DNA of 28,576 nucleotides from Paramicrosporidium saccamoebae KSL3. Taxonomy: Eukaryota; Fungi; Cryptomycota. The position numbers and the translations under genes are program-made. Position 1 is the first letter of the stretch. Each line of letters starts with the position of its first letter. The DNA is taken from the NCBI GenBank assembly GCA_002794465.1, contig MTSL01000213.1:1-28576 (forward strand), given 5' to 3'. Below are positions 2,732 to 25,938 of the stretch, piece by piece. The notes under the pieces were generated by a model. The model made no database searches, was not told the origin of the DNA, and was given only the letters and a program-made list of their open reading frames with translations.

Positions 2732-4809
2732 TTATTTTTTATTTTTATTTACTTTTAAAATGGATTCAGTGGGCAAACTTTCCATATTGTACACAATGTC
2801 CTCACGATGATTAAATGTGCTGGGAATCGGGGCAAACTGACTTTTCTGGAGCATACGGTACTTTCGAAACACCAGAAGAGCAATAATTAGGATGAGCAAA
2901 GCAGCGCTAGCGACCAGAGTTGTCATGAGAAGAATTGGCGACGCCTCCACATCATCGCTAGCCACTCCCCGCCCAAGATCCCAAATGCCGTCCTTGTCAT
3001 CAAAGTATTCCGCGTTCGGAGGATAGTAGTTGCGCAGAAACGATTCTGCAAATACTTCATTAGATTCTATGACGTCCTTAGAAAGCGATCCCCAAAAGGA
3101 AATCCGAAAGTTTTCGAGAATCCCAGTGCCAGACGTCTTTGGCGAATTTTTCACCGTCAAGGACCACACACCTTGAATAGGTTCTCCCCAGAACGCCAGT
3201 GTCATCATAGTCCAGTCCCTGAGGCCTTTTGGACTAGTGTCCAAAGGACGACGGGTGGCAAGTGGAATGACAGTGCCGGATGGAGACTTTAGAAAAATTG
3301 TCAAATCCCCACGAGACGAATGCTTGATATTTAGTGTCACTGTGACCTGTTCCAGATTGCTAATATTTTCGAGATGCATGGAACGAATTACATTCTCATC
3401 AATCAAAAACTCTTTGACGGCCTCCTGGGATTTGGAAATTGCCAAATTGCATACAATTCGGGGCATTGACCGGACTGTCATCTTGTCCACGCTTTTCCAT
3501 GTCCTTGCAGCCTCTACAATTTTGTGGGCATCAACTTTGCCAAATCCAAATCTGTAGCTGTAAAGTCGTCCAGCGCCATTTCGGATCCATGAAGAGTCTT
3601 TGGGGCTAAACGAAACTGCAGTTTGTACGCAAATGTACCAAAGGTCCCGCCATGTGAGATTGGGATTGACTGAGAGCGCCAATGCCAAAATTCCCGCAAC
3701 CATGGGGGCTGCCGCCGAAGTCCCCCCATGCTTCAGGGTGCATCGATTGCCTCCGAGGTCTGTTGTTGGGATTTTATAATCCTCGTTGCTACTGTATGCA
3801 GTGACGAGCTGAGCACTGCATGGCTCCATGTACTTGGGCATTTTGTGATTCACATCGATCGCCCCTACAGTCAATGCAAATATTCCGTTTGCATAGCCAT
3901 CATAGTTGCAATTGTCCACCGATTTCCCATTCCCGGCGGCAAAGACATATATGGATCCCTTTCCACCACGACCATTCACAAGCCCATCTATAAAGGAGCG
4001 CAATACCAAAGCGTCGGGAGCGTCAATGGCCTTGCCATCGTCAGCAGGTCCCCAGCTGCAGGAATAAATGTGATTCTCGTGGTATTTGTGCACGACCGCC
4101 GCAGCTTCATTGGTGCTGGACACGGCCATGGACAGAATTCTAATGGCAGAGATTTGTGCCTCGGGACAAATGCCCACTCCGCAGATGCCATTGTCTGGTT
4201 TCGAGACTAACTGCCCGGCGCAGCGGGTTCCGTGGTGATCTCTCAAGGTTGGGTCGGGTACCGGAAGCAACTTTCCAGAGTTAAAGTCATAGGACAGGTC
4301 TTTTCGGAACGCATCCTTCAAATCTGAATGCTCATAGTCCACTCCTACAGAATCAATTCTCCCATGAAATTTGTACCGTCATCGATTAAACTAATCACGA
4401 CGCCCTTGCCCTTAACGCCCTTTTCCCAAACAGGACCAACATTGAGGTCATGTCCCGGTGTCTTCCGATTGAACAAGTACCATTGTTTGGAAAAGAGCGG
4501 ATCATTAAAGACTTTAGTATCTGTGCCCGCCGCCATGCGGGAGCTGAGAGAGTGCGTGCGGACATTATAGAGTGTCTTCTTTCTCTGCTTTAACCACTGA
4601 TACATTGCCACTCGACGCTTCAAGTCGACAACTTGAGCAAAGTCACACAGAATAGAGTGCGGCATCCAGGCCAGCACAGCGCAAGGAAACGAACGCGGGA
4701 GAACAAACTGTTCAGCAAACTCTACCACAACCGACCCGTGCGACAGTAACACATAGCTCAAAAAGAATAGACATGCAACTTTAAGAGACCATGGTACAGC
4801 CAGACGCAT
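2732..4809 (-). CDS. KEX2: Kexin/furin-like subtilisin proprotein convertase, 681 aa, 2 exons (4809-4377, 4344-2732)
   Basis: Signal peptide MRLAVPWSLKVACLFFLSYVLL from the first ATG (4809; the ORF-track start at 4833 is TTG). DPLFSKQWYL; catalytic IDDG|V (joined across a 32-nt intron 4376-4345), HHGTRCAG, GNG and GGTSAAAP; P domain with RGDL; C-terminal transmembrane segment. Confidence 0.95.
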
Positions 4810-4923
4810 AAGCCAGTGCAAGCCGAGATGCAATTTATGGCTTGCGATTCAGCCCCCCGATTTGGAATTTTGATAAATACATTCTTTGTGTGTGTTTAAA
4901 GTTATATTAGTTACCATCAGCTA

Positions 4924-5076: not shown

Positions 5077-7353
5077 TCACATCCCCCCGCCGGCTGCTTT
5101 GGCAAATTCGGCCACTAGGGCTTGCTGTGTACTACTGGCAACAGGAGCATACGTTTTGTATTCCATGGAAAACTCGCCCTTTCCCTGCGTGAGGGAGCGA
5201 AGCTCGGTAGAATATCCAAACATGTTGTTGAGCGGAACGTCGGCAGTAATCACCAAAAAGTCGTCTTGGGTGTCCGTGTCCACAATAAGGCCCTTCTTCT
5301 TGTTGATAGTCCCCATCACTGCCCCTTGGAACTCAACTGGCACCGTAATGGACACTTTCATGATCGGCTCCAGAATGGCCGGTTTGGCCTTTGCAACAGC
5401 CTGGCGGAATCCTTGGATGGTTGCTGAACGGAACGAATATTCATTAGAGTCGACAACATGGGAAGATCCATCGAGCAAGACAATCCGAGTACCCACCACA
5501 GGATGGCCAATGATAGAGCCTTTCAAAGTCGCCTCGTTGAATCCCTTTTCGCACGCAGTAATGTACTCGGTCGGGATGGCTCCTCCAACCACTTGGTTGA
5601 CAAATACGTTATTAAACCTCGAAACGTCATCTGTGGCTTCGCCATACCAGTCACCGACCGGCTCAATGTATCCCGCCACACGTCCAAACTGGCCTGCTCC
5701 CCCCGACTGTTTCTTGTGGGTATAGTCGAATTCGGCCCGACTTGTAATGGTTTCTCGGAATGCAACCTGTGGTTTCCCAGTGGTGCAGGGACAATTATAC
5801 TCGCGTTTCATGCGCTCAACGTAAATTTCCAAATGAAGCTCGCCCATCCCAGAGATGATAGTTTCATGGCTCTCAGAATCAATGTGCACCCTAAACGTCG
5901 GATCCTCTTTTTGGAAACGCGCAAGTGCTTTGGTAAAATTGGGATTGTCCTTGGCAGTGGGCCGAATTGCAAGGGAAATGACCGGCTCTGGCACATGCAT
6001 GGGACTCATAGTGGCCCGGACAGTCCCATCAGTAAACGTATCGCCAGAGGCACATTCCACACCAAACATGGCGCAAATCTCTCCAGCGCCCACCTCGTCC
6101 ACATCCTCCATCTCGTTGGCATGCATCCGTACCAGACGGGGCACTTTGACCTTTTTTCCATTGGCCACATTGACAATATAAGCTCCGCGCACTAATTTTC
6201 CCTGGTAGATTCTCATATAGGTGAGCTGTCCAAACTTGCTCTCTTCAAGTTTAAAGGCCAGCCCTACAAAGGGGGCCTCTGAAACCGTGCTCATTTGAAG
6301 CTTTTCCTTGCTTTGGCAGTCGTATGCACTGTTAGTGACTTCGGCTGGGTTTGGGAGATAGTCAATCACACCGTTCAATAAAAGCTGCACTCCAACGTTT
6401 TTGTAAGCCGCCCCCATGAACACTGGGATCATTGACCTGGATATTGTTGCCCTTCGGATGGCAGCCTTTAATTCCTCAACCGGAGGATCCTGCTCCAGCA
6501 AGAAATATTCAGCAATCTGATCATCAACATTGGCAAGCACGCTCACAAGTTCGCTCCTCTTGGCTCGTGCCAAGGCTTTCAAGTCTTCTGGAATGTCTTT
6601 TTCTATAATCTGATCCCTAAACTGTTAGCACAACTAAGACGGTGAGCCGTACCCAAACGGACCGTGGAAATAGAGTGCCCGCTCCCTAACGAGATCCACA
6701 ACTCCAACATGGGCATCTTCAGTGCCAATGGGAATTTGCACCGCCGCTGCATTGTGCTTTAGTTTGCTGCGCATCTTGTCAATGACATTAAATGGATTGG
6801 CCCCCAGCCTGTCAAGTTTGTTGATAAAGGCGATCCGTGGAATGTCGTATCGCTTCATTTGACGATCAACAGTCATTGTCTGACTCTGGACTCCACTGAC
6901 TCCGCACAGTACAAGAATGGCACTATCCAAGACACGGAGAGCGCGCTCCACCTCAATGGTAAAATCCACATGTCCCGGAGTATCAATAATGTTGATATTC
7001 TTGCCAGTCCAATGGCAATATGTGGCAGCGGACTGGATGGTAATGCCCTTTTCGCGCTCAAGGTCCATACTGTCCATTTTGGCCCCAACTCCATCTTTTC
7101 CCCGTACCTCGTGTATCGAATCGATACGACCAGTATAATACAAAATGCGCTCCGTAAGAGTCGTCTTTCCAGAATCAATGTGAGCAGAAATTCCAATATT
7201 CCGCAGATTTTCTAACCGTGCCTACAATAAGAACTATTATGACATTGCTACTGCATCGACGATTGTTGAAGAGTTTCTCCCAAAAGAAACATTTCTCATC
7301 AGACGAAACCTTATGGGCCTGAATGAAGAATGTATAATTGTGAAAGAATACAT
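5077..7353 (-). CDS. MEF1: Mitochondrial translation elongation factor G1, 736 aa, 3 exons (7353-7252, 7221-6653, 6616-5077)
   Basis: [40 protein letters not shown]; domain [13 protein letters not shown] and domain [16 protein letters not shown]. Introns of 30 nt (7251-7222) and 36 nt (6652-6617, with GCTAAC branch site) restore the frame. The Arg/Ser-rich presequence [20 protein letters not shown] is consistent with mitochondrial targeting. Confidence 0.95.
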
Positions 7354-9097: not shown

Positions 9098-11431
9098 ATG
9101 AAGTTGAACAATTTCACGAGTGCTGTCCTTGCGGCCTGCTTCCTGGCCGCGGTGAATGCAGCTTGTACTCTAGACACACTAATCAGTCAACCAGGCGCCT
9201 TTGAAAGCAGCACTACACAGTGCCATCCCTTGGCCACCACACCTAGTCACTCCCCCCACTGGTTTACTGCGATCAGCACCCCAGAACGTAGGCTTGCCTT
9301 TAGTGCTCAGGTCTTTCAACTGGCCAACCCGCCGCAGAGAGGTCATGGAGCGACGGCGGGGCGATACTATCAATCTGCCTTTAATGATGCGGTAAAGAGC
9401 AGCTTGAGAGGCATCAATTCGAACGATGTGGCAGCCTGTCAGCACGACGAATGCTGTCAATTCCTGTCAGATGCTATTCGGGGGATCCCCCAGAACAGCT
9501 TGAAAGCTTTGTCGGTTCGATGCGTCATGCGAATCACCGAGGACGCCAAAAGTGGGACCGCAGGGAGAGATCTAAAGATCCTGAACCTGCTGCCGACTGA
9601 TGTTCTAAAGACCAAGGGCTATGCAATTATCAGACAGCTGTCTGGAGAGGGCGGGATCAAAGTTGTTCCCAGCACAGTGCTTGGCCATATTCTTTCTCAG
9701 CCAGCAGCGTGTCAAGCTCTAAGCAGCGGAGATTGGGCCACACTGCTAACCACCTCCTTAAAGATAGCAAAAGAGTGCCTCCACGCAGGACAAAAGAATT
9801 TCACTAACGCATATGCTCCCGGGGCAAAGACAAGCAAGTTGGACGCAGCAGCGTTTGAGCTCTACAATAGGGATATCCACCGCCAACTAATACCAACTCT
9901 CACCTCTGACCAAGTAATGCACTATGCAGGAAAGGCAGAAGAAGGTCAATTTCCAGGCCACAATTTGGATTTGAATGCACTTGGATCAAACGCAAAAGGT
10001 CTCACTCGTCGTCTGCTCCTGGGCATGACCCATCAGTTCCCGGATTATCGCATGGAATTTTCAAGATCGGCCTGGTCCAAGGTGAGCGAAGACATTTTCA
10101 AGGACCTACCTGCCGACGATGCTGCCGCAATAGCCAATGCTATTAGACCCACAACCCGCGGAGATAGTATTCAGGAGTGGTTGTCAAAGACGCAGCTTGA
10201 GCATTTGGTAGTGCATCACGAAATTTGTAGTGTCCTCCTTCCTGTAACGATGAATCGCAAGATTGCGATTACAAAGGAATGCTTTGCCTCGATGCAACCA
10301 AAGACTCAAGCGGCTGCTCTCGTAAATGGTGGCACACTGCCAAATGACCTCTTGGCGAGTGCCACCGGCGATCAAGTCAGCGCATGGAGCTATAATGGGA
10401 CACAGGGACTAAATTTGCTGGGATTGATACGCAACCGCGAAAATATTTCCAAACTCATCGCTCTGATGGGCGCAAATGTGGAATATGATCATCCCTGCAA
10501 GTTAATCACCGATCTGGACATGCTTAAGGATCTGCCAGTTCTTCAAAAGTTTATGAGTGTCCGTTGTCGTTCCAGAATGGCATTCGAGCTGGAGGCAGAG
10601 GATTATGTTGGACTGGATCCCCGAATGATCTATCTTCAGACATTTGCAGAGATGAAGCGCGTACGCAAGCCCGAGTTCTGGACCGATATGAATTCTTCAA
10701 TCCTCGGCATCCTTATTACCATTGATGGATTTTGCTCGGATATAGACAGTACAACCTTTTCTGGCTTCAAGAAGGATACCTATTCGGCAGTCACTCGCGA
10801 TTGCCTCCGGCAGCTCCCCTATCTTGATGATTTGGCAGCCGATGTGATCCAGAGCATGCCTACCGCTGTATTCGCGAATGATAATGCTAGTACCATTAGT
10901 GCCGCAGTCGTTTCCAAGATGAGCGCTGAGCAGATTGGAATGGTTGGAAACGCAGCCACATCGGGCATTAGTATCGGTGCGCATTTGTCAGAGACTATTC
11001 TTGATAAATTCAGTGCTGCACATTACGGAAAGATTCAGCCCGTCCATTGGAAAGATGTTCCGGCTGGCTCATTCAAGGCAATCTCTACATCGGAGCGACT
11101 TGCCGCAGTTCCCGGCAATTCCATGGTCCACTGGACAAGAACTCAAGTAGGCAACGTCTCCAAAGACCTCTTGGCTGAAATGACCCCCGATCAGGCGGAG
11201 AACATTAGCAGCTCTGCTAGTGTTGCGGATTCGGCTCTTCATGTTCTGACTCCTGATATCAACTTTTGTCCCGAAACAAGGGCCATCATTGAGAGACGCC
11301 GCAAAGAAGCTAATATCACAGTCGGCGATGAAGCCTCTAGCACCACCTTGATCATTATCCTAGTTGTCGGCGTTGCAGCAGCCCTCGCCGCATGTGCTGG
11401 TTTCTACTTTTGGAGACGCAATCATCAGTAA
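9098..11431 (+). CDS. Uncharacterised Cys-patterned type I membrane/surface protein A, 777 aa
   Basis: Intronless ORF with signal peptide MKLNNFTSAVLAACFLAAVNA, a C-terminal TM LIIILVVGVAAALAACAGFYFW and a very short RRNHQ tail. Paralogous to 12070-14451. Confidence 0.9.
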   Translation: MKLNNFTSAVLAACFLAAVNAACTLDTLISQPGAFESSTTQCHPLATTPSHSPHWFTAISTPERRLAFSAQVFQLANPPQRGHGATAGRYYQSAFNDAVKSSLRGINSNDVAACQHDECCQFLSDAIRGIPQNSLKALSVRCVMRITEDAKSGTAGRDLKILNLLPTDVLKTKGYAIIRQLSGEGGIKVVPSTVLGHILSQPAACQALSSGDWATLLTTSLKIAKECLHAGQKNFTNAYAPGAKTSKLDAAAFELYNRDIHRQLIPTLTSDQVMHYAGKAEEGQFPGHNLDLNALGSNAKGLTRRLLLGMTHQFPDYRMEFSRSAWSKVSEDIFKDLPADDAAAIANAIRPTTRGDSIQEWLSKTQLEHLVVHHEICSVLLPVTMNRKIAITKECFASMQPKTQAAALVNGGTLPNDLLASATGDQVSAWSYNGTQGLNLLGLIRNRENISKLIALMGANVEYDHPCKLITDLDMLKDLPVLQKFMSVRCRSRMAFELEAEDYVGLDPRMIYLQTFAEMKRVRKPEFWTDMNSSILGILITIDGFCSDIDSTTFSGFKKDTYSAVTRDCLRQLPYLDDLAADVIQSMPTAVFANDNASTISAAVVSKMSAEQIGMVGNAATSGISIGAHLSETILDKFSAAHYGKIQPVHWKDVPAGSFKAISTSERLAAVPGNSMVHWTRTQVGNVSKDLLAEMTPDQAENISSSASVADSALHVLTPDINFCPETRAIIERRRKEANITVGDEASSTTLIIILVVGVAAALAACAGFYFWRRNHQ

Positions 11432-12031: not shown

Positions 12032-12069
12032 GCAGCGACCGTCCAGTGCGGTGATTCACCTTGTTTACG

Positions 12070-14451
12070 ATGAGACTCTCTGCTGCTGTATTGATCATAA
12101 CTGCAGCGCTTTTGCAGAACACTTCTGCTTCTGCTGTTACCGCACAGACTTACTCTCACAATGGGCCCGCTGCAAAGGCTGCGGTGAGTAAAGACGGAAT
12201 TACCGATTTTGCTGATGATAGTGTGATTAATACGGGATCTCCGCCATTTGACAAACCTGCATCATTACCTCCGCTCGTCTTCCGGGCAATGACTGCTAAC
12301 AATATCATCACGTTTGCCAAATATGGTGCCAAGCATGCTGGTGTCAAGTTGGACCCGAAGACAGACTTGAACAATGCCAATTACAAAAAATTCCTGGCCG
12401 GTATCGGCAGTGAACAAATTCAAGCCTGTACCAACGACCACTGTCTTAGGTGGCTCTACAAAGGCGCCTTTGAGCTCAAACTCGGAGGTTCTCTCAAGGG
12501 AAGGGATGCCTTAAATGGTGTCCAAGTCCGTACGATTGTTGATTCTGCATTTAAAGGTGATTGTCTGAAAGCTACCAATCAAACCCAAACAGTGGAAGCT
12601 GCCTGCGTGAAGGGACAGTTGGATGCCATCCCGGAAAAAGTTAGAAAAGCTTACGCGGCACAGATCATCACAACAGCTGGGGACAATCTCCATTATCTTT
12701 CTGCTGATATGCTCAAATCCGTCTTTTCAGTGGCCTCTGCATGTGAGAAGATTAGAAATGCAGGCAGTTTGAAAGCAATCCTAACTAGCAATAGTCTAGC
12801 AGGCGCAGTTACCGCGGAATGCTTTGCGCATATCCCTCCCGCGGTTATCAATGCAATTCAAGGAGATAGTACAGACGGTGGAGTTACTCAAGCCAAGGTT
12901 AACGTCGCGAGCAAAATTGGATTGTACAAACTATACAATGGTGCACTTCCCAAGCCAATGCTTGAAGGTATTAGCGCTGCGTTGATGAAGGATTTCGCAA
13001 CTGGGTTCGCCAGTGGAGATAGACCTGGTAAAGGTCTCGTTTTGGAGAACATTACCACTAACAACCTGTCGAGTATAAATCAAAAGACACTCTTGGGAAA
13101 CCTCAATGCTAATGATGCTGTCAAGCTGGCTTCAACTGGTAAAAAGCTTACTTTGGCACATTTTGACAAAATTTCTGCTGAAGATGCATATACTGCACTG
13201 AGACACTTTGACCCGACTGCCTTTGGAAATCTAGGTGGTGATATTATTGCTCACATCATGAACGACTACCCGGCCGTCTGCTCACTTCTCCCCGAGACTA
13301 TCGAGTACAAGAATGTCAAGTTGACCAATTCAGATTGTTTCCGCTACTTGGATCCTAAATCTCAGGCAAAAGTGCTTGCAACGGCCGCCAGTGTTCCTGA
13401 CAATGCCCTCGTCCATGTCACGTCTGACATGGTGAAAGGATGGGAATATACGGGGGCTCGCTCAGAGAGTTTCTCTGGTGCCAATGTCTTGGGAGCCAAT
13501 CCGAAACGCCCCAACATTGAAAGCATTATTGCCGGTCTTGGAGTCGATCCCGATGGTCCTAATCCGTGCAAAGATCAAATTCCTTCTGTTACCGACATGG
13601 CTGTAGTCCTGGGTGATAACATAACGTACGCGTGCTTCAAAGAGGGAGAACATGAGATCCCTACCGACAAAGACGCCAAGTTTAGTGAACGCCTCCGTTA
13701 CATGGTGCCTTTCCCGCAGCTATTGAAGGCTCAGGGCATAAAGTTCTTTGAGAATTTGTCAGAGAAAACTTTTGCAACTCTTATGAAGACGGGCACATTC
13801 TGTAGGGGAGTCGATATTGATACTTGGTCCGTGATCAAGCCCGAAATCAAGAAGAATACAAGCTCCAGGTGTCTCGCTGAGCTCATGACCCATCTGTCCC
13901 CCACAGCGGAAGATCTCAAAGGAATGTCTGAAAGCGTCCTCGCAGGTCTTCAGCCTAGTCAGATTCCTGCATCTATGATCCCGTCCTTTAGCAAGGAGCA
14001 ACTCATGGCCGCTGATCCGTCTATTGCTACCATCTTTACCGCCGACACTCTTAAAGCTATCGACGTGACTGCTTTGAACGGTGAATTCTGGGCGAATGTC
14101 TCTCCTGCAGCATTCGGAGGAGTTGCAACGGTTCAAGATATTAAGCCTGAAAACATGACCAAGTGGACTGAGGCTCAGGTCACAAAGGCCTCAGAAGAGG
14201 CCTTTACGCCCCTCACCAAGGAGCAGGCTCAGACTGTTGGCTCCGAAGCTGCAGCTGACGCTTCTCCTGTGAAGGCACTCGTGGCAATGAAGGGAATCTC
14301 TGAAGAAGCTCGCCAAGTCCTCAAGTCACGCTTGAAGGCCGAAGATGCAGCATCGGAAGGAATCCCAACTTGGGTGTTGTTCATCATTGGCGGAGTGATC
14401 GCCGTAGCTCTCATTGGCGGTCTGGTCTACTTTTTTGTTCTTCGCAAGTAG
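12070..14451 (+). CDS. Uncharacterised Cys-patterned type I membrane/surface protein B, 793 aa (paralog of A)
   Basis: First ATG at 12070 gives signal peptide MRLSAAVLIITAALLQNTSA; C-terminal TM WVLFIIGGVIAVALIGGLVYFFVL with RK tail. Collinear conserved blocks with protein A. Confidence 0.9.
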   Translation: MRLSAAVLIITAALLQNTSASAVTAQTYSHNGPAAKAAVSKDGITDFADDSVINTGSPPFDKPASLPPLVFRAMTANNIITFAKYGAKHAGVKLDPKTDLNNANYKKFLAGIGSEQIQACTNDHCLRWLYKGAFELKLGGSLKGRDALNGVQVRTIVDSAFKGDCLKATNQTQTVEAACVKGQLDAIPEKVRKAYAAQIITTAGDNLHYLSADMLKSVFSVASACEKIRNAGSLKAILTSNSLAGAVTAECFAHIPPAVINAIQGDSTDGGVTQAKVNVASKIGLYKLYNGALPKPMLEGISAALMKDFATGFASGDRPGKGLVLENITTNNLSSINQKTLLGNLNANDAVKLASTGKKLTLAHFDKISAEDAYTALRHFDPTAFGNLGGDIIAHIMNDYPAVCSLLPETIEYKNVKLTNSDCFRYLDPKSQAKVLATAASVPDNALVHVTSDMVKGWEYTGARSESFSGANVLGANPKRPNIESIIAGLGVDPDGPNPCKDQIPSVTDMAVVLGDNITYACFKEGEHEIPTDKDAKFSERLRYMVPFPQLLKAQGIKFFENLSEKTFATLMKTGTFCRGVDIDTWSVIKPEIKKNTSSRCLAELMTHLSPTAEDLKGMSESVLAGLQPSQIPASMIPSFSKEQLMAADPSIATIFTADTLKAIDVTALNGEFWANVSPAAFGGVATVQDIKPENMTKWTEAQVTKASEEAFTPLTKEQAQTVGSEAAADASPVKALVAMKGISEEARQVLKSRLKAEDAASEGIPTWVLFIIGGVIAVALIGGLVYFFVLRK

Positions 14452-14993: not shown

Positions 14994-15789
14994 TTATAGA
15001 GGTGCTACAATATCATTGAGGAAAGAGGATAAATCTATTCCAACTCCTTCCTCGGGCGTCTCACTCTTCAATTGACCATCAACATTGGTCATGTTGAGCA
15101 GAACAAGCTGTCGCAGAATAGTCTCCAAATGAGAATTGGATTGTTTGAGGATGGCCGAATTCACAGAATCGGCCAAGTCTTCTCGATGCTGCATTGCCAG
15201 TAGATGCTGCACCGGTGAATCGGAGGGATCGGAATACGCCAACAACACAATGACATCCTAAATCATATTACAACCAGACTACAGGCCGCACCTCCAGGTG
15301 TTTCTTTAGCATTGGTCGATTCTGGACGAGCGGCGTGATGGATGATTCTATAAACTCGAGGGCCGTAGTTGATTCTCCTCCCCGAACCATCTCTACAAAT
15401 TGTTGGCACAGCAGCTTGAACCGCAATAAACATCCATCCACGTCTTCGTTAGAGTCGATACCATCCTGCATGTCCACGCCCAACAACTGCGGGAAGAACT
15501 CTCCCATGTACTGGAGGGCTTCAGCTAGACGTCCGTCCAGGATGAGATTCTTTAGATGACTGCGGTACTGAAGAGTTTGGGCTGCGAGTAGCTCGGCCTT
15601 ACTCAGCGTCTCCTTTGCGGGGCCCAGCCACTGTGCCAGAAACGCCTCGGCCGTCTCATAGTAGCAGTGATGTGCCAGATAGCTGAATATCAAATGTGCC
15701 GCCGAGAGGTCGATTTTCTCATTAGCGATAATTGAGCTGGCTAGGTCGTTGTTGTCAGTGGTCGGAATGTCAACCTTGAGCATTTTCAT
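14994..15789 (-). CDS. LisH-CTLH-CRA protein (GID/CTLH complex; RanBP9/Gid1-like motifs, no SPRY), about 253 aa, 2 exons (15789-15292, 15257-14994)
   Basis: LisH LIFSYLAHHCYYETAEAF; CTLH YRSHLKNLILDGRLAEAL...FPQLL...LRFKLLCQQFVEMV; CRA LLAYSDPSDSPV...REDLADSVNSAIL. A 34-nt intron (15291-15258) joins KHLE|DVIVLLAY. The start ATG (15789 or 15783) is uncertain. Confidence 0.85.
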
Positions 15790-15819
15790 GTTGAGGGGTC
15801 GGGGTGTGGTGCCGTGCCG

Positions 15820-16232
15820 ATGCTTCACAACGAGGACGCTGAAATGACCGATTCTCCCAACCAGCAGCAACCGCAGCAGTATGACTTATTGGCCCAACCT
15901 TTTCTTGTAGGGAAGATGGAAAGGGCAAGGAAAAGTTTTACCCAATGCTAACATCTCACGACGACGGATATCAGGACATAATCCTGACCTCTGGTATGTC
16001 CCTCCACCATTCTCATGCAGTAGACAACCTCGACGAAAGCATGTTGGACGACGAGGAAGAATGGCGTGCCAACTCTGACGGCGAGGAGAGTGAAGAGGAG
16101 GGACTGGACGAGGAGGACGGCGAAGAAGCGGAGATGGTCATTGAATGTCCCTTTGAGGAACCCAAGGCAGCGCTGCTGGACCTATCCCACGAGGATGCTC
16201 CCCTAGAGTCGCCTCGTATCTCCATACCATAA
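15820..16232 (+). CDS. Small acidic intrinsically disordered orphan protein, about 114 aa, tentative 2 exons (15820-15906, 15975-16232)
   Basis: Asp/Glu-rich ORF 15945-16232. A putative 68-nt GT-AG intron (15907-15974, GCTAAC branch site) joins it in frame to MLHNEDAEMTDSPNQQQPQQYDLLAQPFL. AATGCATTTTATTT follows the stop. Confidence 0.45.
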
Positions 16233-16814: not shown

Positions 16815-18629
16815 CTATTCTCGGGGGAGAAGGGCCGTCTTTTCGGGCATCTCGACAAATGCGGGGGGAAGGGCAAGCGATGCCCGGTTGGGACACCACA
16901 CGGGGGTGGAGGGAGTGATTGGGATCGATTTAGGAAGAGTATATCGAGCCAATTCTCGCAGATCTCTTGCATCCAAAACAATCAAAAATGATTTCTGTGA
17001 AAAAACATCCAAGACGGCAGTGACAACAACGCCGTCATCGTCTTCGGTCCTAGCAGTGCTGGAAGGATAGGCCAATTCGGCACGCGGGATAAACAATGGG
17101 GCACTCGCATAACAGCCGGCCCGATGCCATTGTTTGGAGCGGATTGGCGTAGACAGGTCACATTTTACAATGGCATTTGGTAAAAACCCGGGTTTTCCTC
17201 GACTATCGCGATCGATGGTCACTCCAAACGAATGTCGGTAAGGTGCGCCCACAAAGGACGGAGAGATTACGGGAGAGGAAAGCGAATAGTCTGTCAGATG
17301 GTGGAAGAGGGCAAGAGGAAAGGAGGGGAGTTGACCCGCCGCTCCATCGAAACGAGCAATCTCCTCCCCAAGACGGAAGAGACAATATCGGCGGAGCGTA
17401 CTATTCGGCGGCAGTTGGTGTCTCAACTCTTCCAATTCACTCACACGAATCTCGTCAAGACGGCCATTGGACGACGGTGAATCCCCTGCAACAACATCAA
17501 TGTAAATAGTGTCAGCGTCCCCTTCAAACGCATTCACCACGGCAGTCACATAACTGGGCTCGCTTCGATAGACGGCAACCAATTGTTTCGCACCCCGAGA
17601 GATTACGTAAAACAATGTATCGGCCTTTTCGTCAAATTTCAACAAGGAATCAACGCCATCAACAATACTCGACGCAGAATTGGGCATTCGTTTGGCGTAG
17701 CGATTGGAATGAATGACAACAATGACAAAGCGCTCGCTGATAGCAAAATACTCCAATTTGGTGGGAGGAGCCAAAAAGGTGGCCACCACAGTCCCAACAT
17801 GGGGAATGTTCTGAAACGTATCCATAGACTGAGACAAGGAAATGACATGATATCGGGCAGGATTGTCCTTTAGCTCACACAACACATTAATTAGTTCCCC
17901 GGTGCGTGGATCGATCCTCGGTGATGCACAGGGATTTCCCTTAAAGAGAGTATTCAAATCGGTGTAGGCAATGTGCTGTCGGGGAAGCAGACCAGTGGGT
18001 TCAATCAGATGGATACGGTCCAGACCGTTCTGATGCAAAATCAGTCGGTTGTCAGTTCCTCGATAAGGTCCCATAGGAAACGAAGCAGTAATGGTCTCTT
18101 GAATGACCACAGATTCGGGATGGAGGCGTTCCTTTCGGGGCCGCGTCTCAAACCATCGTCTTCGTCTCACATCGCCCAGTTTGGTGACAATCCTTTGCGT
18201 GTCGAGACGTTCTGGGTCACCCTGTGCACGTTGCCACTCCTCCAACGCATTTTCAGCAAGCAACTGACTGCGGAACTGCACTTGGCCATTGTCAAGAAAC
18301 TCTAAATGCACGAGCATACGGAGACAGTCATCCACTCGACCAATCGGACGTCGTTCGCGTCGCGTATTGATTCCGGCCAGACCCAATTCACTGCGCCAAT
18401 AGTGAATGTCAAAGACAGAGGGCACCAGCATGAATATTGACCCAACAAGCCAGCTGGGTGCTCCCGCCGACGTAAGAGATTCTGCACTCTGATCCAGCGG
18501 AAGCATTACCCGAAGCGGATGGTGCCACGTATTTCGAAAGGTGAGACGCCGAACCGCAAGTCGTTCATCATACAGCGTCTCCTCCTCCTCCGTCTCTGCA
18601 TCTATTGCCGCCTCAGTTCTTGTCCTCAT
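16815..18629 (-). CDS. Carotenoid cleavage oxygenase/RPE65-family protein, predicted catalytically inactive, 604 aa
   Basis: Family landmarks in order: GAPSWLVGS, FLDNGQVQFRSQLL, SPRIDPRTGEL, FAISERFVIV, VVNAFE, PVISPSFVGAPYRHSFG, PNAIVKCDL, PLFIPR, EDDDGVVVTAVLD, FLIVLDARDLRELAR. The iron-ligand His residues are missing at all four expected positions. Confidence 0.85.
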   Translation of the reverse strand: MRTRTEAAIDAETEEEETLYDERLAVRRLTFRNTWHHPLRVMLPLDQSAESLTSAGAPSWLVGSIFMLVPSVFDIHYWRSELGLAGINTRRERRPIGRVDDCLRMLVHLEFLDNGQVQFRSQLLAENALEEWQRAQGDPERLDTQRIVTKLGDVRRRRWFETRPRKERLHPESVVIQETITASFPMGPYRGTDNRLILHQNGLDRIHLIEPTGLLPRQHIAYTDLNTLFKGNPCASPRIDPRTGELINVLCELKDNPARYHVISLSQSMDTFQNIPHVGTVVATFLAPPTKLEYFAISERFVIVVIHSNRYAKRMPNSASSIVDGVDSLLKFDEKADTLFYVISRGAKQLVAVYRSEPSYVTAVVNAFEGDADTIYIDVVAGDSPSSNGRLDEIRVSELEELRHQLPPNSTLRRYCLFRLGEEIARFDGAAGQLPSFPLALFHHLTDYSLSSPVISPSFVGAPYRHSFGVTIDRDSRGKPGFLPNAIVKCDLSTPIRSKQWHRAGCYASAPLFIPRAELAYPSSTARTEDDDGVVVTAVLDVFSQKSFLIVLDARDLRELARYTLPKSIPITPSTPVWCPNRASLALPPAFVEMPEKTALLPRE

Positions 18630-18671
18630 TGCATCACATTAGCTTCATCGGATCATCCGTTTTAGCCACCC

Positions 18672-18761
18672 CCAATTAGTCTCCGAGTCTATCTCAAGCC
18701 AATAGGTGCTGCCCAAAAAAGGAAATATTCAGATTCAATACAAATTGGGAATTGGTCCAAT
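18672..18761. promoter_or_regulatory. Divergent promoter with five CCAAT/ATTGG boxes
   Basis: CCAAT at 18672, 18699 and 18757; ATTGG at 18744 and 18751, within a 154-nt spacer between divergent ATGs. Confidence 0.45.
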
Positions 18762-18783
18762 TACACTAGATCGTGCTTGCCAC

Positions 18784-20082: not shown

Positions 20083-20265
20083 TTCTTTGCCGACGGTTGT
20101 ATTATTCTTTGCAGACGATTGTATTAATTATTTGCAGACAGTCACATCAATTCTTTGCAAACAGTCACATCAATTATTTGAAAACAGTCACATCAATTAC
20201 TTGCAGACAGTCACATCAATTCTTTGCAGACAATCACCTCAATTCTTCGCCGACGATCGGATTTT
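20083..20265. repeat. 23-bp minisatellite x8 overlapping the USP7 stop codon
   Basis: Core unit TTMTTTGCAGACAGTCACATCAA, contiguous with no spacers. Unit 7 (20220-20242) contains the minus-strand TGA at 20241-20239, and unit 8 lies inside the CDS. Confidence 0.92.
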
Positions 20266-23200
20266 TATGGATCGTTCAATACCAGAAGAAATGGGCGCAG
20301 ATTTCAGTCCCGTCGATGAGGCGCTTGGATCGGGCCGTCCAATTCCAATCTGATCATGGGGTCCAAGGGTCGTCGATGCAAGAATGTCGTCATCACCAAT
20401 CACACGCGCGCGTCCATACGAAACAATCGAAAATGTCCATTTGTCCGCCTCGGGAGGATTGCCAAGTCGGGTGAATAGTCTCTTTTTTGTCAGACGCCAA
20501 GGCTCAGAGGGCCGGAGTAGGAAGCGGAATGGTCTGGAATGGGCTCTAGAAGGCTCCTTGGCAGCATAGCTAAAGACGGAAATCACCAAATGGTTTCTGG
20601 GCGGATCGAGCTCTGTTGGATCGACTCCTCCTTCAATATATACTGTTGAAGTCTCGCCGATAGAGGCCAAAGAGTCATCCTCAATGTAATCACGAATCAC
20701 GCGATTATTATGCGATTCAATGATGCGAATTGGCCGTTCAAGGGCATTCTGGAATGTCGTGGGTAGTCGAGACACAAGACTGTTGGGAGTATCCTTCACC
20801 CCAATGTAGACAATACACTCCTCTCCAGCCTGGTCAATATTTTCTGGTTCATCAACCAAAGTCAGCCGGATGCGCTTCATTGAATCCAACTCGGCAACAG
20901 GCATCATAGTCGCCTCACACGCAATAGTCAGCCCCTCAGTGGCAATGTTCGAGGGAAGCGATACATGGCTCAGAGTCTCCTCTAGCGTCGCCTTCTCAGA
21001 CGGAGGCTTAAGTACAGTTAAATCACCAATTTCGTCAATCAGATAAAGACGAACATGTGTGGCAACCGCCTTAATCTTCCCTGCCACAGCTTCCGTCAAC
21101 TCCAGAAACGGCGTGTTCAGTGAAATGCGCGCACTGATAATTTCGGCCAGGTCCGACGGATCAGGCTGAGTGCCAGACTCGACAGCCACAAGATGCTTCA
21201 ATCGGATAAATAGCATGGTGTGCAAGTCCCTGAAATAGTCTCCAACCTTTGGTAGTTTCACTTCGTGGGGCAGAACCGGATGGGCCAGTTGGAAGCAGAC
21301 AATGTCGCCGGTCTGCAATTGGTTCTCGGCAAAGGACTTTGTTGGTGACAGAACATCAATGCGCATGGCCTTGACCTCTTCAAAAAATTCCAACTTGACA
21401 TTCTTTGGCAGTCCCACCATTTCTCGCAGCTGCGGATACACATCTTCCAAAGTTGCCGTGGGCTTTACATACAATTTCCCAACAATCTTGATAATTCCAT
21501 GTTCGGGATCGTAAAACTTGAACAGCACACAGAACAGCTCCTTTGTGTACTGTTCAAATCCATCAACCTCGGCATACAGACAAAACTGCGGCAGTTGCGA
21601 TGATGTCCGGCTGTAATAATGAGCCAGCGTCTTGTTCTCATCCTCAGCACCAATGGGCTCGTCCAATCGCACCGTTTTATTCCGACGCAGCGCAAATGTC
21701 CAGAATCGCAGTCGAGATGGCTCAATGCCCATGTCCTTGGCCACAGACTCCTTCAGACTAAGTACAGTGTCGTCTCGTCGAACCCGGGAGACGGTGCTGC
21801 TTGTCATGGGGAAATTGTGATTGTTAAAGTTGAACAGGTCGTATCCTCCATGCTCACCCAAGTGCTTGTCAGTCAAAATGTGTGCCTTGATGGTCATCAA
21901 CTGCTGCTGCTTCTCCAACCGGCGTGCCTTTTCCGCTTCGTCTTCAGCGCGGACAGAAGTGCCAATATAGGCGGGAATGTCTTCTTCATTGATGGGACAT
22001 AGAATGTTCTCTAAATCACTCTCGCGAATGTACACCAACATGTACGCATTCGTGAAACGCCTAAACTTGTCCCGACTGCGGAGTCCCATTCTGGGAGCCA
22101 AATCTTCGTCAGCCACACCGCCAAAAGTGTCCTCGACTGCCTCTTTACGGCTTGCGGGAATAACTTTGGTGTCATCGAAGCGGAACCATTTACTCTTCTC
22201 TCCATCACGGGGGTCATGGATGTAGACATAATAGTGCCCGCCATGAGAATCGCCGCTGTGAACAAAGACGCCCTGCAAGACATATTTCTGTGATTGTCCC
22301 TTTTGCGGCGAGTCAGGTGCAAGATATTTGTCCAGACTTATCGACAGCGGGAATTCAAGCCGATCATTAATCTTTACAGTGGCCATGACTTTGGGATCAA
22401 ACGCATAGCGTTCAAGATGGACGTGTAAAACGGGGGGGAACGCTTCGAATTCTACAAAACGACGCGCATCCTGCAATCCGTGTCCTTCGGCATGGTACTT
22501 GTTGTCCCCCTGAAGCATCTCTTCGCGAACATAGTTGTCAAATGACTCTTCCAGTGTCCTCATCCCTTTGATTGTCAATTGCAAGTCATAGAACGACTCG
22601 GTGCGAGTCGATTGAAAGGGAACATTTAGACAGCTGATCACATTTCGGACTCTGCCCGTAAATAGCTTTTCAATAGTTCCCTCCGCCTTGGTTGCCTTCA
22701 TACGCCTCTCCAGCTCATCCATCAAGACTCTGCTGAATTCTTGCACATCGCTTTGAATAAACGACTCGATTGTATCCCATCCAAACGCACGTGTCAATTC
22801 CTGTGTAGACACGGGAACATCGCTGAATTGAAGTCGCCAAAAGATTCGCTGAAGAGCCAAAGCACTACTTTCGCTGGGCACATCACTCTCGGTGGGGATG
22901 AGATAGAGAGCTTGACGGAAGGCATTTGTAAAATATAGCGACTGCAGCAGCGAATTCATGTAGCAAGTGGCCCCTTGGTTGGCCAGACCAACAAATCCCG
23001 TAACCTGCTTTGAATTGTAATTGATAAAATTGTGCCACAAGACCCCAGTCTCATCCTTGATTATGCGTATCCGAGCCGTGATAAACATGGAATCGTTCAG
23101 AATAAGAGGGGTTCCCTGGGAATTGGCGTCTCCCTCGTGAAGAGTCTTTAACGGACAGAATGCTCCAAATCCCCAATCTGCTTCGGTGGCATCGAATCGG

Positions 23201-23667
23201 TGTTGGGTGTACTTTGAGAAGCAAATTTCAGGACGCTCAATATTTTCAACACTCAAAATGATCTGAGCACATACTGCCCAGTCTGAAGACTGAGACAGAG
23301 ATGGGGAGACTGCCGCCTCACCCTTGGCCTCGTCCTCGGGCACATATGCAACATAGAGCGAGAGCGAGTTTCCTTCATGCTGGTCGTTTCCCGTAGGGTA
23401 TACAAGCAATTTCCAGCAGTGCTTTCCCACCCTAAACACGGAACTGTACTCTTTTGTTTTGATTTCAGAAACCTTGTTGAGGCGCCATTGAAAGTAGCCC
23501 TCGCTGTCCACAGTTAGTTCACTATTCTCGGGAAATGACATTGCCCCTCCGCTCGGGAGCGAGACATTGGAATGACTTGCAGTGCCACTAGATGAATGGG
23601 ACACTTCCATAGGAACGGAAAGCTCAGTTGGCGGGTCTACATCCGTCATGGAAATGTCCTCAGTCAT
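20239..23667 (-). CDS. UBP15: Ubiquitin C-terminal hydrolase USP7/Ubp15 (MATH + USP + UBL region), about 1142 aa
   Basis: MATH (WKLLVYPTGN...HRFDATEADWGF); Cys box GLANQGATCYMNSLLQSLY; QSDVQEFSRVL; His box HSGDSHGGHYYVYI; WFRFDD; C-terminal EEVK...LQTGDIVCFQ. Start probably ATG 23667 or 23706 (the ORF-track 23823 is TTG). Confidence 0.95.
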   Translation of the reverse strand: MTEDISMTDVDPPTELSVPMEVSHSSSGTASHSNVSLPSGGAMSFPENSELTVDSEGYFQWRLNKVSEIKTKEYSSVFRVGKHCWKLLVYPTGNDQHEGNSLSLYVAYVPEDEAKGEAAVSPSLSQSSDWAVCAQIILSVENIERPEICFSKYTQHRFDATEADWGFGAFCPLKTLHEGDANSQGTPLILNDSMFITARIRIIKDETGVLWHNFINYNSKQVTGFVGLANQGATCYMNSLLQSLYFTNAFRQALYLIPTESDVPSESSALALQRIFWRLQFSDVPVSTQELTRAFGWDTIESFIQSDVQEFSRVLMDELERRMKATKAEGTIEKLFTGRVRNVISCLNVPFQSTRTESFYDLQLTIKGMRTLEESFDNYVREEMLQGDNKYHAEGHGLQDARRFVEFEAFPPVLHVHLERYAFDPKVMATVKINDRLEFPLSISLDKYLAPDSPQKGQSQKYVLQGVFVHSGDSHGGHYYVYIHDPRDGEKSKWFRFDDTKVIPASRKEAVEDTFGGVADEDLAPRMGLRSRDKFRRFTNAYMLVYIRESDLENILCPINEEDIPAYIGTSVRAEDEAEKARRLEKQQQLMTIKAHILTDKHLGEHGGYDLFNFNNHNFPMTSSTVSRVRRDDTVLSLKESVAKDMGIEPSRLRFWTFALRRNKTVRLDEPIGAEDENKTLAHYYSRTSSQLPQFCLYAEVDGFEQYTKELFCVLFKFYDPEHGIIKIVGKLYVKPTATLEDVYPQLREMVGLPKNVKLEFFEEVKAMRIDVLSPTKSFAENQLQTGDIVCFQLAHPVLPHEVKLPKVGDYFRDLHTMLFIRLKHLVAVESGTQPDPSDLAEIISARISLNTPFLELTEAVAGKIKAVATHVRLYLIDEIGDLTVLKPPSEKATLEETLSHVSLPSNIATEGLTIACEATMMPVAELDSMKRIRLTLVDEPENIDQAGEECIVYIGVKDTPNSLVSRLPTTFQNALERPIRIIESHNNRVIRDYIEDDSLASIGETSTVYIEGGVDPTELDPPRNHLVISVFSYAAKEPSRAHSRPFRFLLRPSEPWRLTKKRLFTRLGNPPEADKWTFSIVSYGRARVIGDDDILASTTLGPHDQIGIGRPDPSASSTGLKSAPISSGIERSIKIRSSAKN

Positions 23668-23870
23668 CCGGCCGGTCAGCTTGTGGCGCGCCAGGGGTGT
23701 ATACATATGTAAACTATGATTAGAAACGATTGTTGTAATGTATTCATTGTATGGCAAATAGATTATAATGAAATTTTTGTGCGCGCCGGGTCCGTGTTGT
23801 GTTGGGTCATGTGTAGGCTCCAATCATCCCGGGGATTATCGTCCTTGTCCACCAGTTGGGCGGCCTCGCC

Positions 23871-24515
23871 ATGATCGAACCACTTGGGCGCTTCCTGCGC
23901 TTCTATTCTCGCGTCCTTAACAAGCACAAATATGCAACGCAAGTAGCCACCGCTGGTCTCCTCTGGTTTTCTGGTGATATTCTCTGTCAAGGCCTTGTTA
24001 GTCTGGCTGAGGACGACAGGAAGCCATTTGAGCTCGACTGGCGAAGGACGGGTCGAATGACGCTCTATGGCCTAGGCTTCTCTGCCCCCGTCTATACATT
24101 CTGGTATTCGTTTCTGGAGCGGTACAGTCAGCGAATGTTTGCCCAGCGACCCGGCACAACCGCTCCGTGGATGCACGCGCTTCTCAGACGTTTTCCTCTG
24201 GATGCCGCACGCATTCGTACCTGGAAGATAATCAGCTTCAAGTTGGCCATGGACACGTTTGTCTTTGACCCGCTATATTTGAGTCTCTTCTTCACCATAA
24301 CCTCAGTGATGGAGGGTCGACGACTGAACGAGGTGGGAAAGAAACTGAGGGAGGATCTGGGAAAGACATGGCTTGTTGACATTGCCGTGTGGACGCCCAT
24401 CCAAACGGTCAACTTTCGGTTTGTTCCCGTTTTGTATCAAGCGCTGGTCGTCCAATCTTGCAATGTGGGCTGGAACGCATATCTCTCCTATGTCCAGCAT
24501 CGTAACTCTAGATAA
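23871..24515 (+). CDS. SYM1: Mpv17/PMP22-family (Sym1-like) membrane protein, 214 aa
   Basis: GDILCQ, DWRRTGRM, KLAMDTFVFDP, WTPIQTVNFRFVP, WNAYLSY; ATG in GCCATG context. Orthology within the Mpv17/PMP22 family cannot be resolved by eye. Confidence 0.85.
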   Translation: MIEPLGRFLRFYSRVLNKHKYATQVATAGLLWFSGDILCQGLVSLAEDDRKPFELDWRRTGRMTLYGLGFSAPVYTFWYSFLERYSQRMFAQRPGTTAPWMHALLRRFPLDAARIRTWKIISFKLAMDTFVFDPLYLSLFFTITSVMEGRRLNEVGKKLREDLGKTWLVDIAVWTPIQTVNFRFVPVLYQALVVQSCNVGWNAYLSYVQHRNSR

Positions 24516-24696: not shown

Positions 24697-24759
24697 TTAT
24701 ACATCAACTCGCATGGATTACATATCAACTTGCACGGCCTACACATCGACTCGCATGAC
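24697..24759. repeat. 21-bp tandem triplication of the last six codons plus stop of the orphan gene
   Basis: Minus strand gtc atg cga gtc gat gtg TAG / gcc gtg caa gtt gat atg TAA / tcc atg cga gtt gat gta TAA. Confidence 0.85.
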
Positions 24760-25938
24760 CGACTGTTTTCTGACAGCAGCTGCCCGCACAACCTTTTCCT
24801 CAATTCCCCGGAGCCTCATATTCACCAACAGCCCCGTCATTCCAACTGTGGACACGAGAAGGAATCCCAAGAGAAAGTAAGCAGCCACTGCACTCAAATG
24901 TCCCAAGAACGGCATATAGTATAGCAGCCCCAATGCTTTTGGAGCTGGAGGCGGCTCGTCCTGTCGGATGATTGGTGTCGGCGAGGTGGAAGGCAAGATA
25001 ATATGTGGCCGAGAAGGCGCTGGTGCAGGTGCAGGGGCTGAAGGCGGAACGGTGTCGGGAACCAAAGCAGCATGGAATGTGCGCGGAGTTCCCGGAGTGG
25101 ACACTGCAGTCACTTGTATTCCCGGCTGCTCAGATTCAAAAAGGTACTTAAAGTCCTGTCGAAGATGGTGGGTACATGTACAGTTGTGGGGATGCCTTGC
25201 GTCTTTGTGTTCGTCAAAATATTGAGAAATTCCTGTCACCAGTCTTTGGATAATCGCCGTATCGGGCGCTTCCGAGTCCATTTGAACGTTGACCCGGTTA
25301 ATCTTTTTAATAACATCCAAATAGTGCTTTGGGAAATTTGCAGGAAATACCAGAACATTCCCCTCCACTTTGTTTGGGCTTGCGACGACTTCCCCGTTAT
25401 CTTTCCAAGGCTTGGTAGTAGAATGCTGCCTCTCGGGATGAGACTCGTCTGGCACAGTCGCCCAGATGGGGGGCGTTTCAGGGTTATCCAAATCTGGAGT
25501 ATCCGCTGGCTCCCTCTGGTCGAGGTCAGACGACTCGCTATCATCTGAATGTATGTTCAGGTTTAGCGCCAGCTTTGTGGTTAGAGCATCCATGGGATCG
25601 TCCTCTGAATCAAAAGTGTCCTCCTCCATATAGTCTGAATCTTTGTCAGAATCACCCAGGTCAGGCATCCGTCCCTTTAGCCACTCGAGATTAGCTAGTC
25701 TGTCTGCAATATCTTGGTTGTTTGATATTCTAACGTTTTCTCGTCCAGTCAACGGCGCAAACCCTTTGCGGCCGTGTCGAACCTTACCTCTCTCCCGAAG
25801 ATATCTGGGCTTATACTCGTAGACCCTTCTCGGAGAATACTTTGCGCACAATATATGGCATTGGCTCACTATGAGCAATAGGAAGGACAGGAACACGAAG
25901 CACTTTGAATGCAGCAAGCTACCTAGCCGACTGCTCAT
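24739..25938 (-). CDS. Uncharacterised membrane protein, 399 aa
   Basis: ATG in GCCACCATG context with an upstream in-frame stop. N-terminal hydrophobic segment, then a basic and an acidic region, a Pro/Ala-rich linker and a long C-terminal hydrophobic segment. Confidence 0.75.
   Translation of the reverse strand: MSSRLGSLLHSKCFVFLSFLLLIVSQCHILCAKYSPRRVYEYKPRYLRERGKVRHGRKGFAPLTGRENVRISNNQDIADRLANLEWLKGRMPDLGDSDKDSDYMEEDTFDSEDDPMDALTTKLALNLNIHSDDSESSDLDQREPADTPDLDNPETPPIWATVPDESHPERQHSTTKPWKDNGEVVASPNKVEGNVLVFPANFPKHYLDVIKKINRVNVQMDSEAPDTAIIQRLVTGISQYFDEHKDARHPHNCTCTHHLRQDFKYLFESEQPGIQVTAVSTPGTPRTFHAALVPDTVPPSAPAPAPAPSRPHIILPSTSPTPIIRQDEPPPAPKALGLLYYMPFLGHLSAVAAYFLLGFLLVSTVGMTGLLVNMRLRGIEEKVVRAAAVRKQSVMRVDV

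Follow-up and report, generated by a model that had tools for sequence, protein, structure and literature searches.

A carotenoid-oxygenase-fold protein without the canonical iron ligands in Paramicrosporidium saccamoebae and its orthologues

A four-His iron centre is treated as an invariant hallmark of the carotenoid oxygenase/RPE65 family. In other families, pseudoenzymes such as pseudokinases and pseudophosphatases combine a kept fold, lost catalytic residues and purifying selection with a repurposed, non-catalytic role; by comparison, a full-text literature search aimed at His-less or non-enzymatic members found no characterized pseudoenzyme of the CCD/RPE65 fold. Mutation of any one of the four His abolishes the activity of the mammalian family enzymes (PMC7221588), and only one of three further presumptive CCD genes of Phycomyces has the expected histidines (2016 review, PMC5133782). 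Beyond this one-sentence remark on Phycomyces, no functional study of a His-less or non-enzymatic CCD/RPE65 member was found in the same search. Here we describe a gene, found in a 28,576-nucleotide stretch of DNA from Paramicrosporidium saccamoebae KSL3 (contig MTSL01000213.1, the whole of which is hereafter called the window), whose product is predicted to have the fold of this family without its iron ligands.

Canonical CCO/RPE65 proteins, such as NdCCD (6vcf), NinaB (8fty), RPE65 (3fsn) and Synechocystis ACO (2biw), have the propeller fold and the framework motifs in common with the window protein, which, unlike them, is without the four Fe-ligand His, two Glu and the flanking aromatic residues and has a clade-specific insertion. 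Among the relatives found that carry the name of an enzyme in their source record ("torulene oxygenase" or "carotenoid oxygenase", NCBI), the closest are the CAO-2/CarT-type enzymes of the fungus Hypoxylon (P0014-P0016), which are 26-27% identical to the window protein over ~65% of the query; they share with it a C at position -2 of the first ligand His (His1) and an N(V/F)P(G/M)xP segment, but they keep the four His and the Glu residues, which the window protein does not. Early-diverging fungi also have CCD-like paralogues in which some or all of the ligand His have been lost and which, by profile score, belong to the same superfamily branch. The window protein and its orthologues differ from those paralogues in forming a separate tight group in a neighbour-joining (NJ) tree, in the completeness of the loss, in a signature loop of their own and in strongly conserved synteny.

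Iron-ligand columns and fold

The window protein matches Pfam family PF03055 (RPE65/carotenoid oxygenase) at residues 101-571 with an expectation value (E) of 4.9e-47 and 161.5 bits, the curated cut-off being 27 bits. Because the family N-terminal motifs P58-x-W60-L-x-G63 and P70 sit upstream of this match, the whole propeller is encoded. Orthologues align with the window protein from residue ~4 to ~599, and the annotated start codon is supported by an N-terminal motif, YDERLAVRR, that they keep (Table 1). The preliminary description of this DNA had reported an intact frame of 604 aa, and the open reading frame (ORF) is indeed uninterrupted from its ATG onwards.

An AlphaFold2 model of the window protein, built on the orthologue alignment, has a mean predicted local distance difference test score (pLDDT) of 74.9 and a predicted template modelling score of 0.80; pLDDT is <50 at residues 428-433 and 583-604. 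All 50 of the 50 matches listed by Foldseek against the PDB are members of the carotenoid-oxygenase family, with E down to 2e-32. The top matches include NinaB (8fty, E 2e-32) and NdCCD (6vcf/6vcg, target template modelling (TM) score 0.82-0.84), as well as RPE65, ACO and BCMO of C. elegans. As E for NinaB, NdCCD, RPE65 and ACO ranges from 1e-32 to 1e-26 and the target TM score from 0.74 to 0.84, the seven-bladed propeller fold is retained. These matches, together with the framework residues described below, agree with the earlier claim that the landmarks of the propeller are kept.

The ligand columns were placed in four ways: by pairwise HMMER comparison with 6vcf, 9plv and 8fty, all of known structure; by alignment of a profile of the orthologue clade to 6vcf (NdCCD), 3fsn (RPE65) and 9plv (BCOLg); by a MAFFT alignment with four-His fungal torulene/carotenoid oxygenases; and by an hmmsearch-anchored column read-out of 170 relatives. 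All four placed the columns identically, and the match to 6vcf had an E of 8e-16 when the single sequence was used and of 2e-47 with the clade profile. The window protein has S236, E293, A363 and S574 where the four Fe(II)-binding His are expected, and the His1 column is the one that we take to be RPE65 H180 and ACO H183. At the two mapped columns of the second-sphere Glu, it has A510 (RPE65 E469) and S451 (RPE65 E417). The column of A510 holds Glu in 100% of 95 canonical relatives and in 0% of the clade, while that of S451 holds Glu in 86% of canonical relatives and, within the clade, in the basal members P0010, P0011, P0148 and P0149 alone. Loss of the four Fe(II) His and of the Glu of the SEPxF motif had been claimed before, and the same replacements recur in all alignments to solved structures; the codon positions given then for S236 (17924-17922), E293 (17753-17751) and A363 (17543-17541) are exact.

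The replacements differ from one orthologue to the next. Clade residues are S, A, N, R, R, T, N, N, R, Q, K, R, Q and K in the His1 column and E, V, T, E, E, S, Q, E, R, R, R, T, N and Y in the His2 column. An alternative set of conserved His was looked for across the clade and none was found, H199 and C234 being the only His and Cys residues conserved at >=90%; therefore no substitute His-based metal centre is conserved. Replacement ligands at the metal site, which the preliminary description had named as evidence that would speak against it, are thus not seen as another conserved His set. Since four His and two second-sphere Glu are lost, iron-dependent catalysis is not expected. The best reading of the alignments, which is well supported, is that canonical Fe(II) dioxygenase chemistry would be absent and that the protein would be a pseudoenzyme in that sense.

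Table 1. Positions in the window of the iron-site-less gene, its replaced ligand columns, its conserved motifs and the adjoining intergenic region
Feature	Position	Strand	Details
Coding sequence of the iron-site-less carotenoid-oxygenase-fold protein	16815..18629	-	Intact, 604 aa, ATG start, intronless
YDERLAVRR motif, residues 20-28	18546..18572	-	N-terminal, conserved in orthologues (alignment); helix 22-29 in the AlphaFold2 model
FPMGPYRG motif, residues 184-191	18057..18080	-	Clade-specific in comparison with canonical relatives
H199-Q200	18030..18035	-	H199, the only His conserved at >=90% in the clade; Q200, invariant
S236 codon, Fe ligand His1 column	17922..17924	-	T-A-H-P replaced by C-A-S236-P; alignments to 6vcf and 9plv and column read-out
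E293 codon, Fe ligand His2 column	17751..17753	-	y-m-H-S-F replaced by K-L-E293-Y-F
A363 codon, Fe ligand His3 column	17541..17543	-	F-H-H-V-N-A-F-E replaced by T-A363-V-V-N-A-F-E; VNAFE kept
Clade-specific insertion, residues 420-440	17310..17372	-	GEEIARFDGAAGQLPSFPLA; helix and flexible loop; most conserved segment
S451 codon, second-sphere Glu column (RPE65 E417, FEFPQIN)	17277..17279	-	F-E417-F-P replaced by L-S451-S-P; 3fsn profile alignment
A510 codon, second-sphere Glu column (RPE65 E469, PSEP)	17100..17102	-	y-P-(G/S)-E-P replaced by Y-A-S-A510-P
S574 codon, Fe ligand His4 column	16908..16910	-	G-F-H-G replaced by T-P-S574-T
PEKTALLP motif, residues 595-602	16824..16847	-	C-terminal, kept in crown orthologues; predicted disordered
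Divergent intergenic region, 154 bp	18630..18783	.	Shared with the UDP-glucose 4-epimerase-like gene (ATG at 18784)

Orthologues, selection and location of constraint

The His-less clade, identified by word-indexed and exhaustive profile searches, consists of the window protein, P0001, P0003-P0011 and P0147-P0149. The exhaustive search covered 1.84 billion representatives and added P0147-P0150, whereas a profile search of the word-indexed database for further clade members gave nothing new. The about 14 orthologues, which are mostly metagenomic, are encoded by intact full-length ORFs and are 35-59% identical. By the column read-out, the ligand His are absent throughout the clade except for His3 in P0010 and P0149. 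A metagenomic fragment (P0002) that is 93% identical to the window protein has the same residues at the ligand columns.

Purifying selection, which the preliminary description had named as a test of its proposal, was found in all three independent close pairs analyzed by the Nei-Gojobori method. The ratio of nonsynonymous to synonymous substitution rates (dN/dS) is 0.046 for the window gene and its counterpart at locus L004 (synonymous rate dS 0.78, 366 codons), 0.099 for P0003 and P0019 and 0.079 for P0011 and P0025, compared with 0.11 for the neighbouring UDP-glucose 4-epimerase-like gene (GalE). The 59%-identical orthologue was left out because this comparison is saturated (proportion of synonymous differences pS 0.81). 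Between the window and locus L001, which encodes that protein, the identity of the iron-site-less protein (59%) is similar to those of USP7 (61%) and of a protein with a CTLH domain (58%), while GalE (72%) and MDH (76%) are higher and a lineage-specific unknown protein (38%) is lower.

The window and loci L001 and L005-L009 share microsynteny of the iron-site-less gene with genes for USP7, Mpv17/PMP22, in some loci GalE, and the CTLH-domain protein, the order being USP7-Mpv17-GalE-iron-site-less gene-CTLH; one of these six syntenic loci is from an activated-sludge metagenome. The divergent pair with the GalE-like gene is also present in L008 and L009, with a spacer of 153 bp. The basal P0011 and P0025 have a gene context that differs from that of the window. 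The USP7-Mpv17 pair is inverted relative to GalE between the window (20239-24515) and L001 (1761-6265), as well as between the window and L006 and L007. As gene order is otherwise kept over >20 kb at ~60% protein identity, rearrangement in this lineage is very slow.

The gene for the small CTLH-domain protein (window positions 15268-15870, - strand) directly adjoins that of the His-less propeller, and a CTLH neighbour is also found at five other loci of the crown clade, L001 (10416-11039), L005 (8637-8951), L006 (9658-10167), L007 (10855-11529) and L008 (4811-5326). CTLH-domain proteins occur in GID/CTLH E3 ligase complexes. The adjacency may reflect plain synteny, or it may be a lead to a partner.

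In a survey of ~64 positions that are >=80% conserved in 95 four-His relatives, the clade was found to keep the framework residues P58/W60/G63, D101, G231, D240, F295, N366-A367, D378, R414, K489, W501, P511, E/D530-D531-G533, S547 and L552-D553-A554. Lost are aromatic and Gly residues next to the ligands, i.e., Y291, F362, F573, G575, HWF at residues 98-100, G69 and G102. HWF, F362 and Glu451 are retained in the basal P0010, P0011, P0148 and P0149; these members are intermediate, which points to stepwise decay of the iron centre. When positions are ranked by variability in the clade, the former His columns fall at percentiles 70-88, and Arg or Lys is frequent in them. A ligand pocket that had been conserved at the former metal site would not be expected to be so variable and so often charged, and this argues mildly against binding at the old active site.

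The most conserved segment is instead the clade-specific insertion at residues 420-440. Residues 422-433, EE[IM]ARFDGAAGQ, are the 12-mer of lowest entropy in the clade, and conservation continues to F437-P438-x-A440; residues 422-440 of the window protein carry the complete signature, EE[IM]ARFDGAAGQLPxFPLA. E422, A425, F427, G429, A430, G432, Q433, F437 and A440 show little or no variation in the clade, and canonical relatives are without them. The segment, an insertion of ~16 residues, is missing from NdCCD in the profile alignment and from canonical relatives, and is predicted to form a helix followed by a flexible loop of low confidence, which spans the first of the two low-pLDDT stretches. 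Its peptide was also compared with PDB sequences, where only chance matches to repeat proteins (the DC-SIGNR neck and leucine-rich repeats) were found.

Other clade-specific elements are FPMGPYxG at residues 184-191, in which F184, M186, G187, Y189 and G191 are invariant (alignment A2), as well as D337, R355/E357 and N485. The window protein thus carries loop 422-440, Q200 and FPMGPYxG, and its gene has the CTLH/GalE/Mpv17/USP7 synteny. H199-Q200 is tentatively placed near the position of the third second-sphere Glu, as it would be mapped from RPE65 E148. Q200 itself was considered as that position, but the canonical set has no conserved Glu in the Q200 column of the hidden Markov model (HMM).

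Relatives with partial ligand loss and rival explanations

The four ligand columns could be read in 146 relatives, a sample that was ranked by similarity to the His-less profile and is therefore biased towards His-less proteins. Within it, the number of ligand His is zero in 19 relatives, one in 10, two in nine, three in 13 and four in 95. The next-best relatives after the clade come from early-diverging fungi, with profile E from 1e-81 to 1e-55 and mosaic ligand loss. Lineages with partial or total His loss are Rozella, Amoeboaphelidium, chytrids, Zoopagomycota, Mucoromycota, Mortierellomycota and Glomeromycota. For instance, the ligand pattern (x, His lost) is xHxH in the chytrids Rhizophlyctis and Geranomyces, HHHG in Syncephalis and Ambispora, HHHA in Bifiguratus, HHHS in Actinomortierella, NNHA in Radiomyces and T,Y,D,S in Rozella allomycis (EPZ35816.1), and Amoeboaphelidium KAI3640793.1 is ligand-poor, with N,S in the His3 and His4 columns and the other two columns unreadable. 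In a rough NJ tree, which is distance-based, has no bootstrap and is indicative only, the partial-loss groups form a grade from which the window clade is separate, and the canonical enzymes lie further out. The earlier statement that complete ligand loss is unusual for the family needs correction, as such loss is less unusual in this corner than was assumed, given the 19 of 146 nearest relatives without His and the Phycomyces precedent.

Three groups of relatives are of note in their own right. A Zoopagomycota/Glomeromycota group (P0157, P0158, P0161, P0169 and P0171, including Syncephalis, Ambispora and others) has S-F-G-H where canonical enzymes have G-F-H-G; His4 may be shifted by one residue, in which case iron may still be bound, though with a changed geometry, or else a local misalignment by one position may explain the reading. 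A chytrid clade (P0153-P0156, P0160, P0163, P0167 and P0191) keeps His2 and His4 and has lost His1 and usually His3; its members (Rhizophlyctis, Geranomyces) keep both mapped second-sphere Glu and have N-terminal extensions of 130-260 residues. The clade represents a distinct, half-degenerate state of the iron centre. A distant relative of 677 aa (P0026, ENA) has an unusual architecture, in which a glutamine amidotransferase domain (PF00117) is fused to a four-His PF03055 domain.

We consider it very probable that the window protein is without canonical iron-dependent catalysis and yet functional. Loss of all catalytic residues does resemble a dying enzyme gene, and a decaying pseudogene, or a His loss produced by alignment or assembly error, might in principle account for it. 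Against this account, at least 14 divergent orthologues have intact full-length ORFs, dN/dS is 0.05-0.10 in three independent pairs, the same columns are substituted in comparison with four solved structures and in the independent HMM read-out, and the 93%-identical metagenomic copy agrees. It is rejected on the grounds of the intact orthologues, the low dN/dS and the concordant alignments, and we give it hardly any credence.

Two further explanations accept a functional protein. As carotenoid-oxygenase family members bind hydrophobic polyenes, the window protein could, much as the preliminary description had proposed, be a non-catalytic binding or carrier protein for lipids, carotenoids or retinoids that still uses the ancestral hydrophobic tunnel, which would fit the full CCD fold retained in the AlphaFold2 model and its Foldseek matches and the many conserved framework residues around the tunnel-bearing blades. 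However, the core of the old site is highly variable among the orthologues and frequently holds Arg, Lys or Glu, whereas a hydrophobic ligand site under conservation would not be expected to do so, and the crown group has lost the ligand-flanking aromatics (Y291, F362, F573 and HWF 98-100), so that we regard a carrier of this kind as unlikely. Very strong purifying selection on the gene and the clade-specific set of invariant polar residues would also suit an enzyme with new chemistry without the four-His iron, either cofactor-independent or at a new site (e.g., H199, Q200, D337, R355, E357, E422 and Q433). Yet conservation in the clade extends to just a single His and a single Cys, it is strongest in a flexible loop rich in Gly and Ala and not in residues arranged like a pocket, and no report of iron-free catalysis in the CCD/RPE65 family was found in the full-text search, although work elsewhere is possible; we judge a new enzyme of this sort to be improbable.

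The account that we favour, with moderate confidence, is that of a dead CCD/RPE65 propeller that is functional and has been repurposed as a non-enzymatic binding or scaffold module by means of new surface elements. The propeller scaffold is kept, whereas the four-His Fe(II) centre is gone, together with two, if not all three, of the second-sphere Glu; judging from sequence and fold, the protein would be incapable of iron-dependent alkene cleavage or isomerohydrolase chemistry. The gene persists as a single-copy syntenic orthologue in a deep, compact-genome fungal lineage, and the purifying selection on it matches in strength that on its enzyme-coding neighbour. Constraint has moved from the old metal pocket to the propeller framework and to the clade-specific elements, namely the EE[IM]ARFDGAAGQLPxFPLA helix-loop, FPMGPY(H/R)G, H199-Q200 and the short terminal motifs. 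A non-enzymatic binding or scaffold role through these new surface elements would then be most likely, rather than ligand carriage at the ancestral active site. The centre was probably dismantled stepwise after the function had changed, as basal members still have His3, HWF, F362 and Glu451.

Several points weigh against this account. The role as a binding or scaffold module is putative, a new activity that is cofactor-independent or differently liganded may be compatible with the sequence, and the third second-sphere Glu (RPE65 E148/ACO E150) has no reliable alignment column for the window protein. The proposal of a repurposed pseudoenzyme made in the preliminary description therefore stands in part: the intact fold, the missing four-His centre, the maintenance by selection and the clade-wide loss hold, a lipid- or retinoid-binding role may be possible but is not favoured by the variable and frequently charged old pocket, and the claimed rarity of ligand loss does not hold.

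Taken together with the relatives, the results suggest, tentatively and with less than even confidence, an ancient early-fungal CCD branch in which the iron centre was dismantled repeatedly, the window clade being a fully iron-free end point with the new FDGAAGQ loop and an essential non-oxygenase role. More speculatively, this role might be that of a propeller adaptor in a protein complex, for which the adjacent CTLH gene is a lead.

Remaining features of the window and implications for the family

Genes are densely packed in the window: its 28.6 kb hold ~13 of them, the ORFs are long and uninterrupted, and one or more tiny introns are present. The USP7 encoded here is 36-40% identical to those of named fungi (chytrids, Bifiguratus, Basidiobolus and Zoopagomycota), of which chytrids and Zoopagomycota are highest, and 56-63% identical to those of metagenomic relatives. 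The window comes from a deep-branching fungal lineage with a compact genome. An apparent spliceosomal intron of 36 nt (GTACGG...tgCTAACag...TTTAG) splits a gene for a mitochondrial-type elongation factor G (EF-G) at 6617-6652 (- strand), the ORFs on either side being 5077-6582 and 6634-7143; from this intron, the genome would have ultra-short introns with a yeast-like branch point. A gene for a kexin-like S8 protease is split over two frames (2732-4342 and 4345-4833). Long ORFs without a Pfam match are found at 9098-11431 (+, 777 aa), 12061-14451 (+, 796 aa) and 24739-25938 (-, 399 aa). L001 (12877-15159) encodes a counterpart of the 777-aa ORF at 38% identity, so that this ORF is a real lineage-specific gene, while the 796-aa ORF is only 27% identical to the same L001 protein and may be a divergent tandem paralogue. 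Scans of the window for tRNA genes and Rfam families found nothing.

Annotation pipelines name any PF03055 match "carotenoid oxygenase" or "torulene dioxygenase", as is seen among the relatives analyzed here. Such annotations over-predict apocarotenoid and retinal metabolism in early fungi, which bears on inferences about rhodopsin-based "vision" and carotenoid pathways in fungi. If the branch is indeed ancient and iron-free, it would be the first pseudoenzyme family to be defined for the CCD/RPE65 fold, a case in which the CCD propeller was recruited for a non-oxygenase function that could be studied through its signature loop and the graded natural intermediates. The ligand-free, constrained clade is a modest but real extension of the repertoire of the family, rather than a new kind of system.

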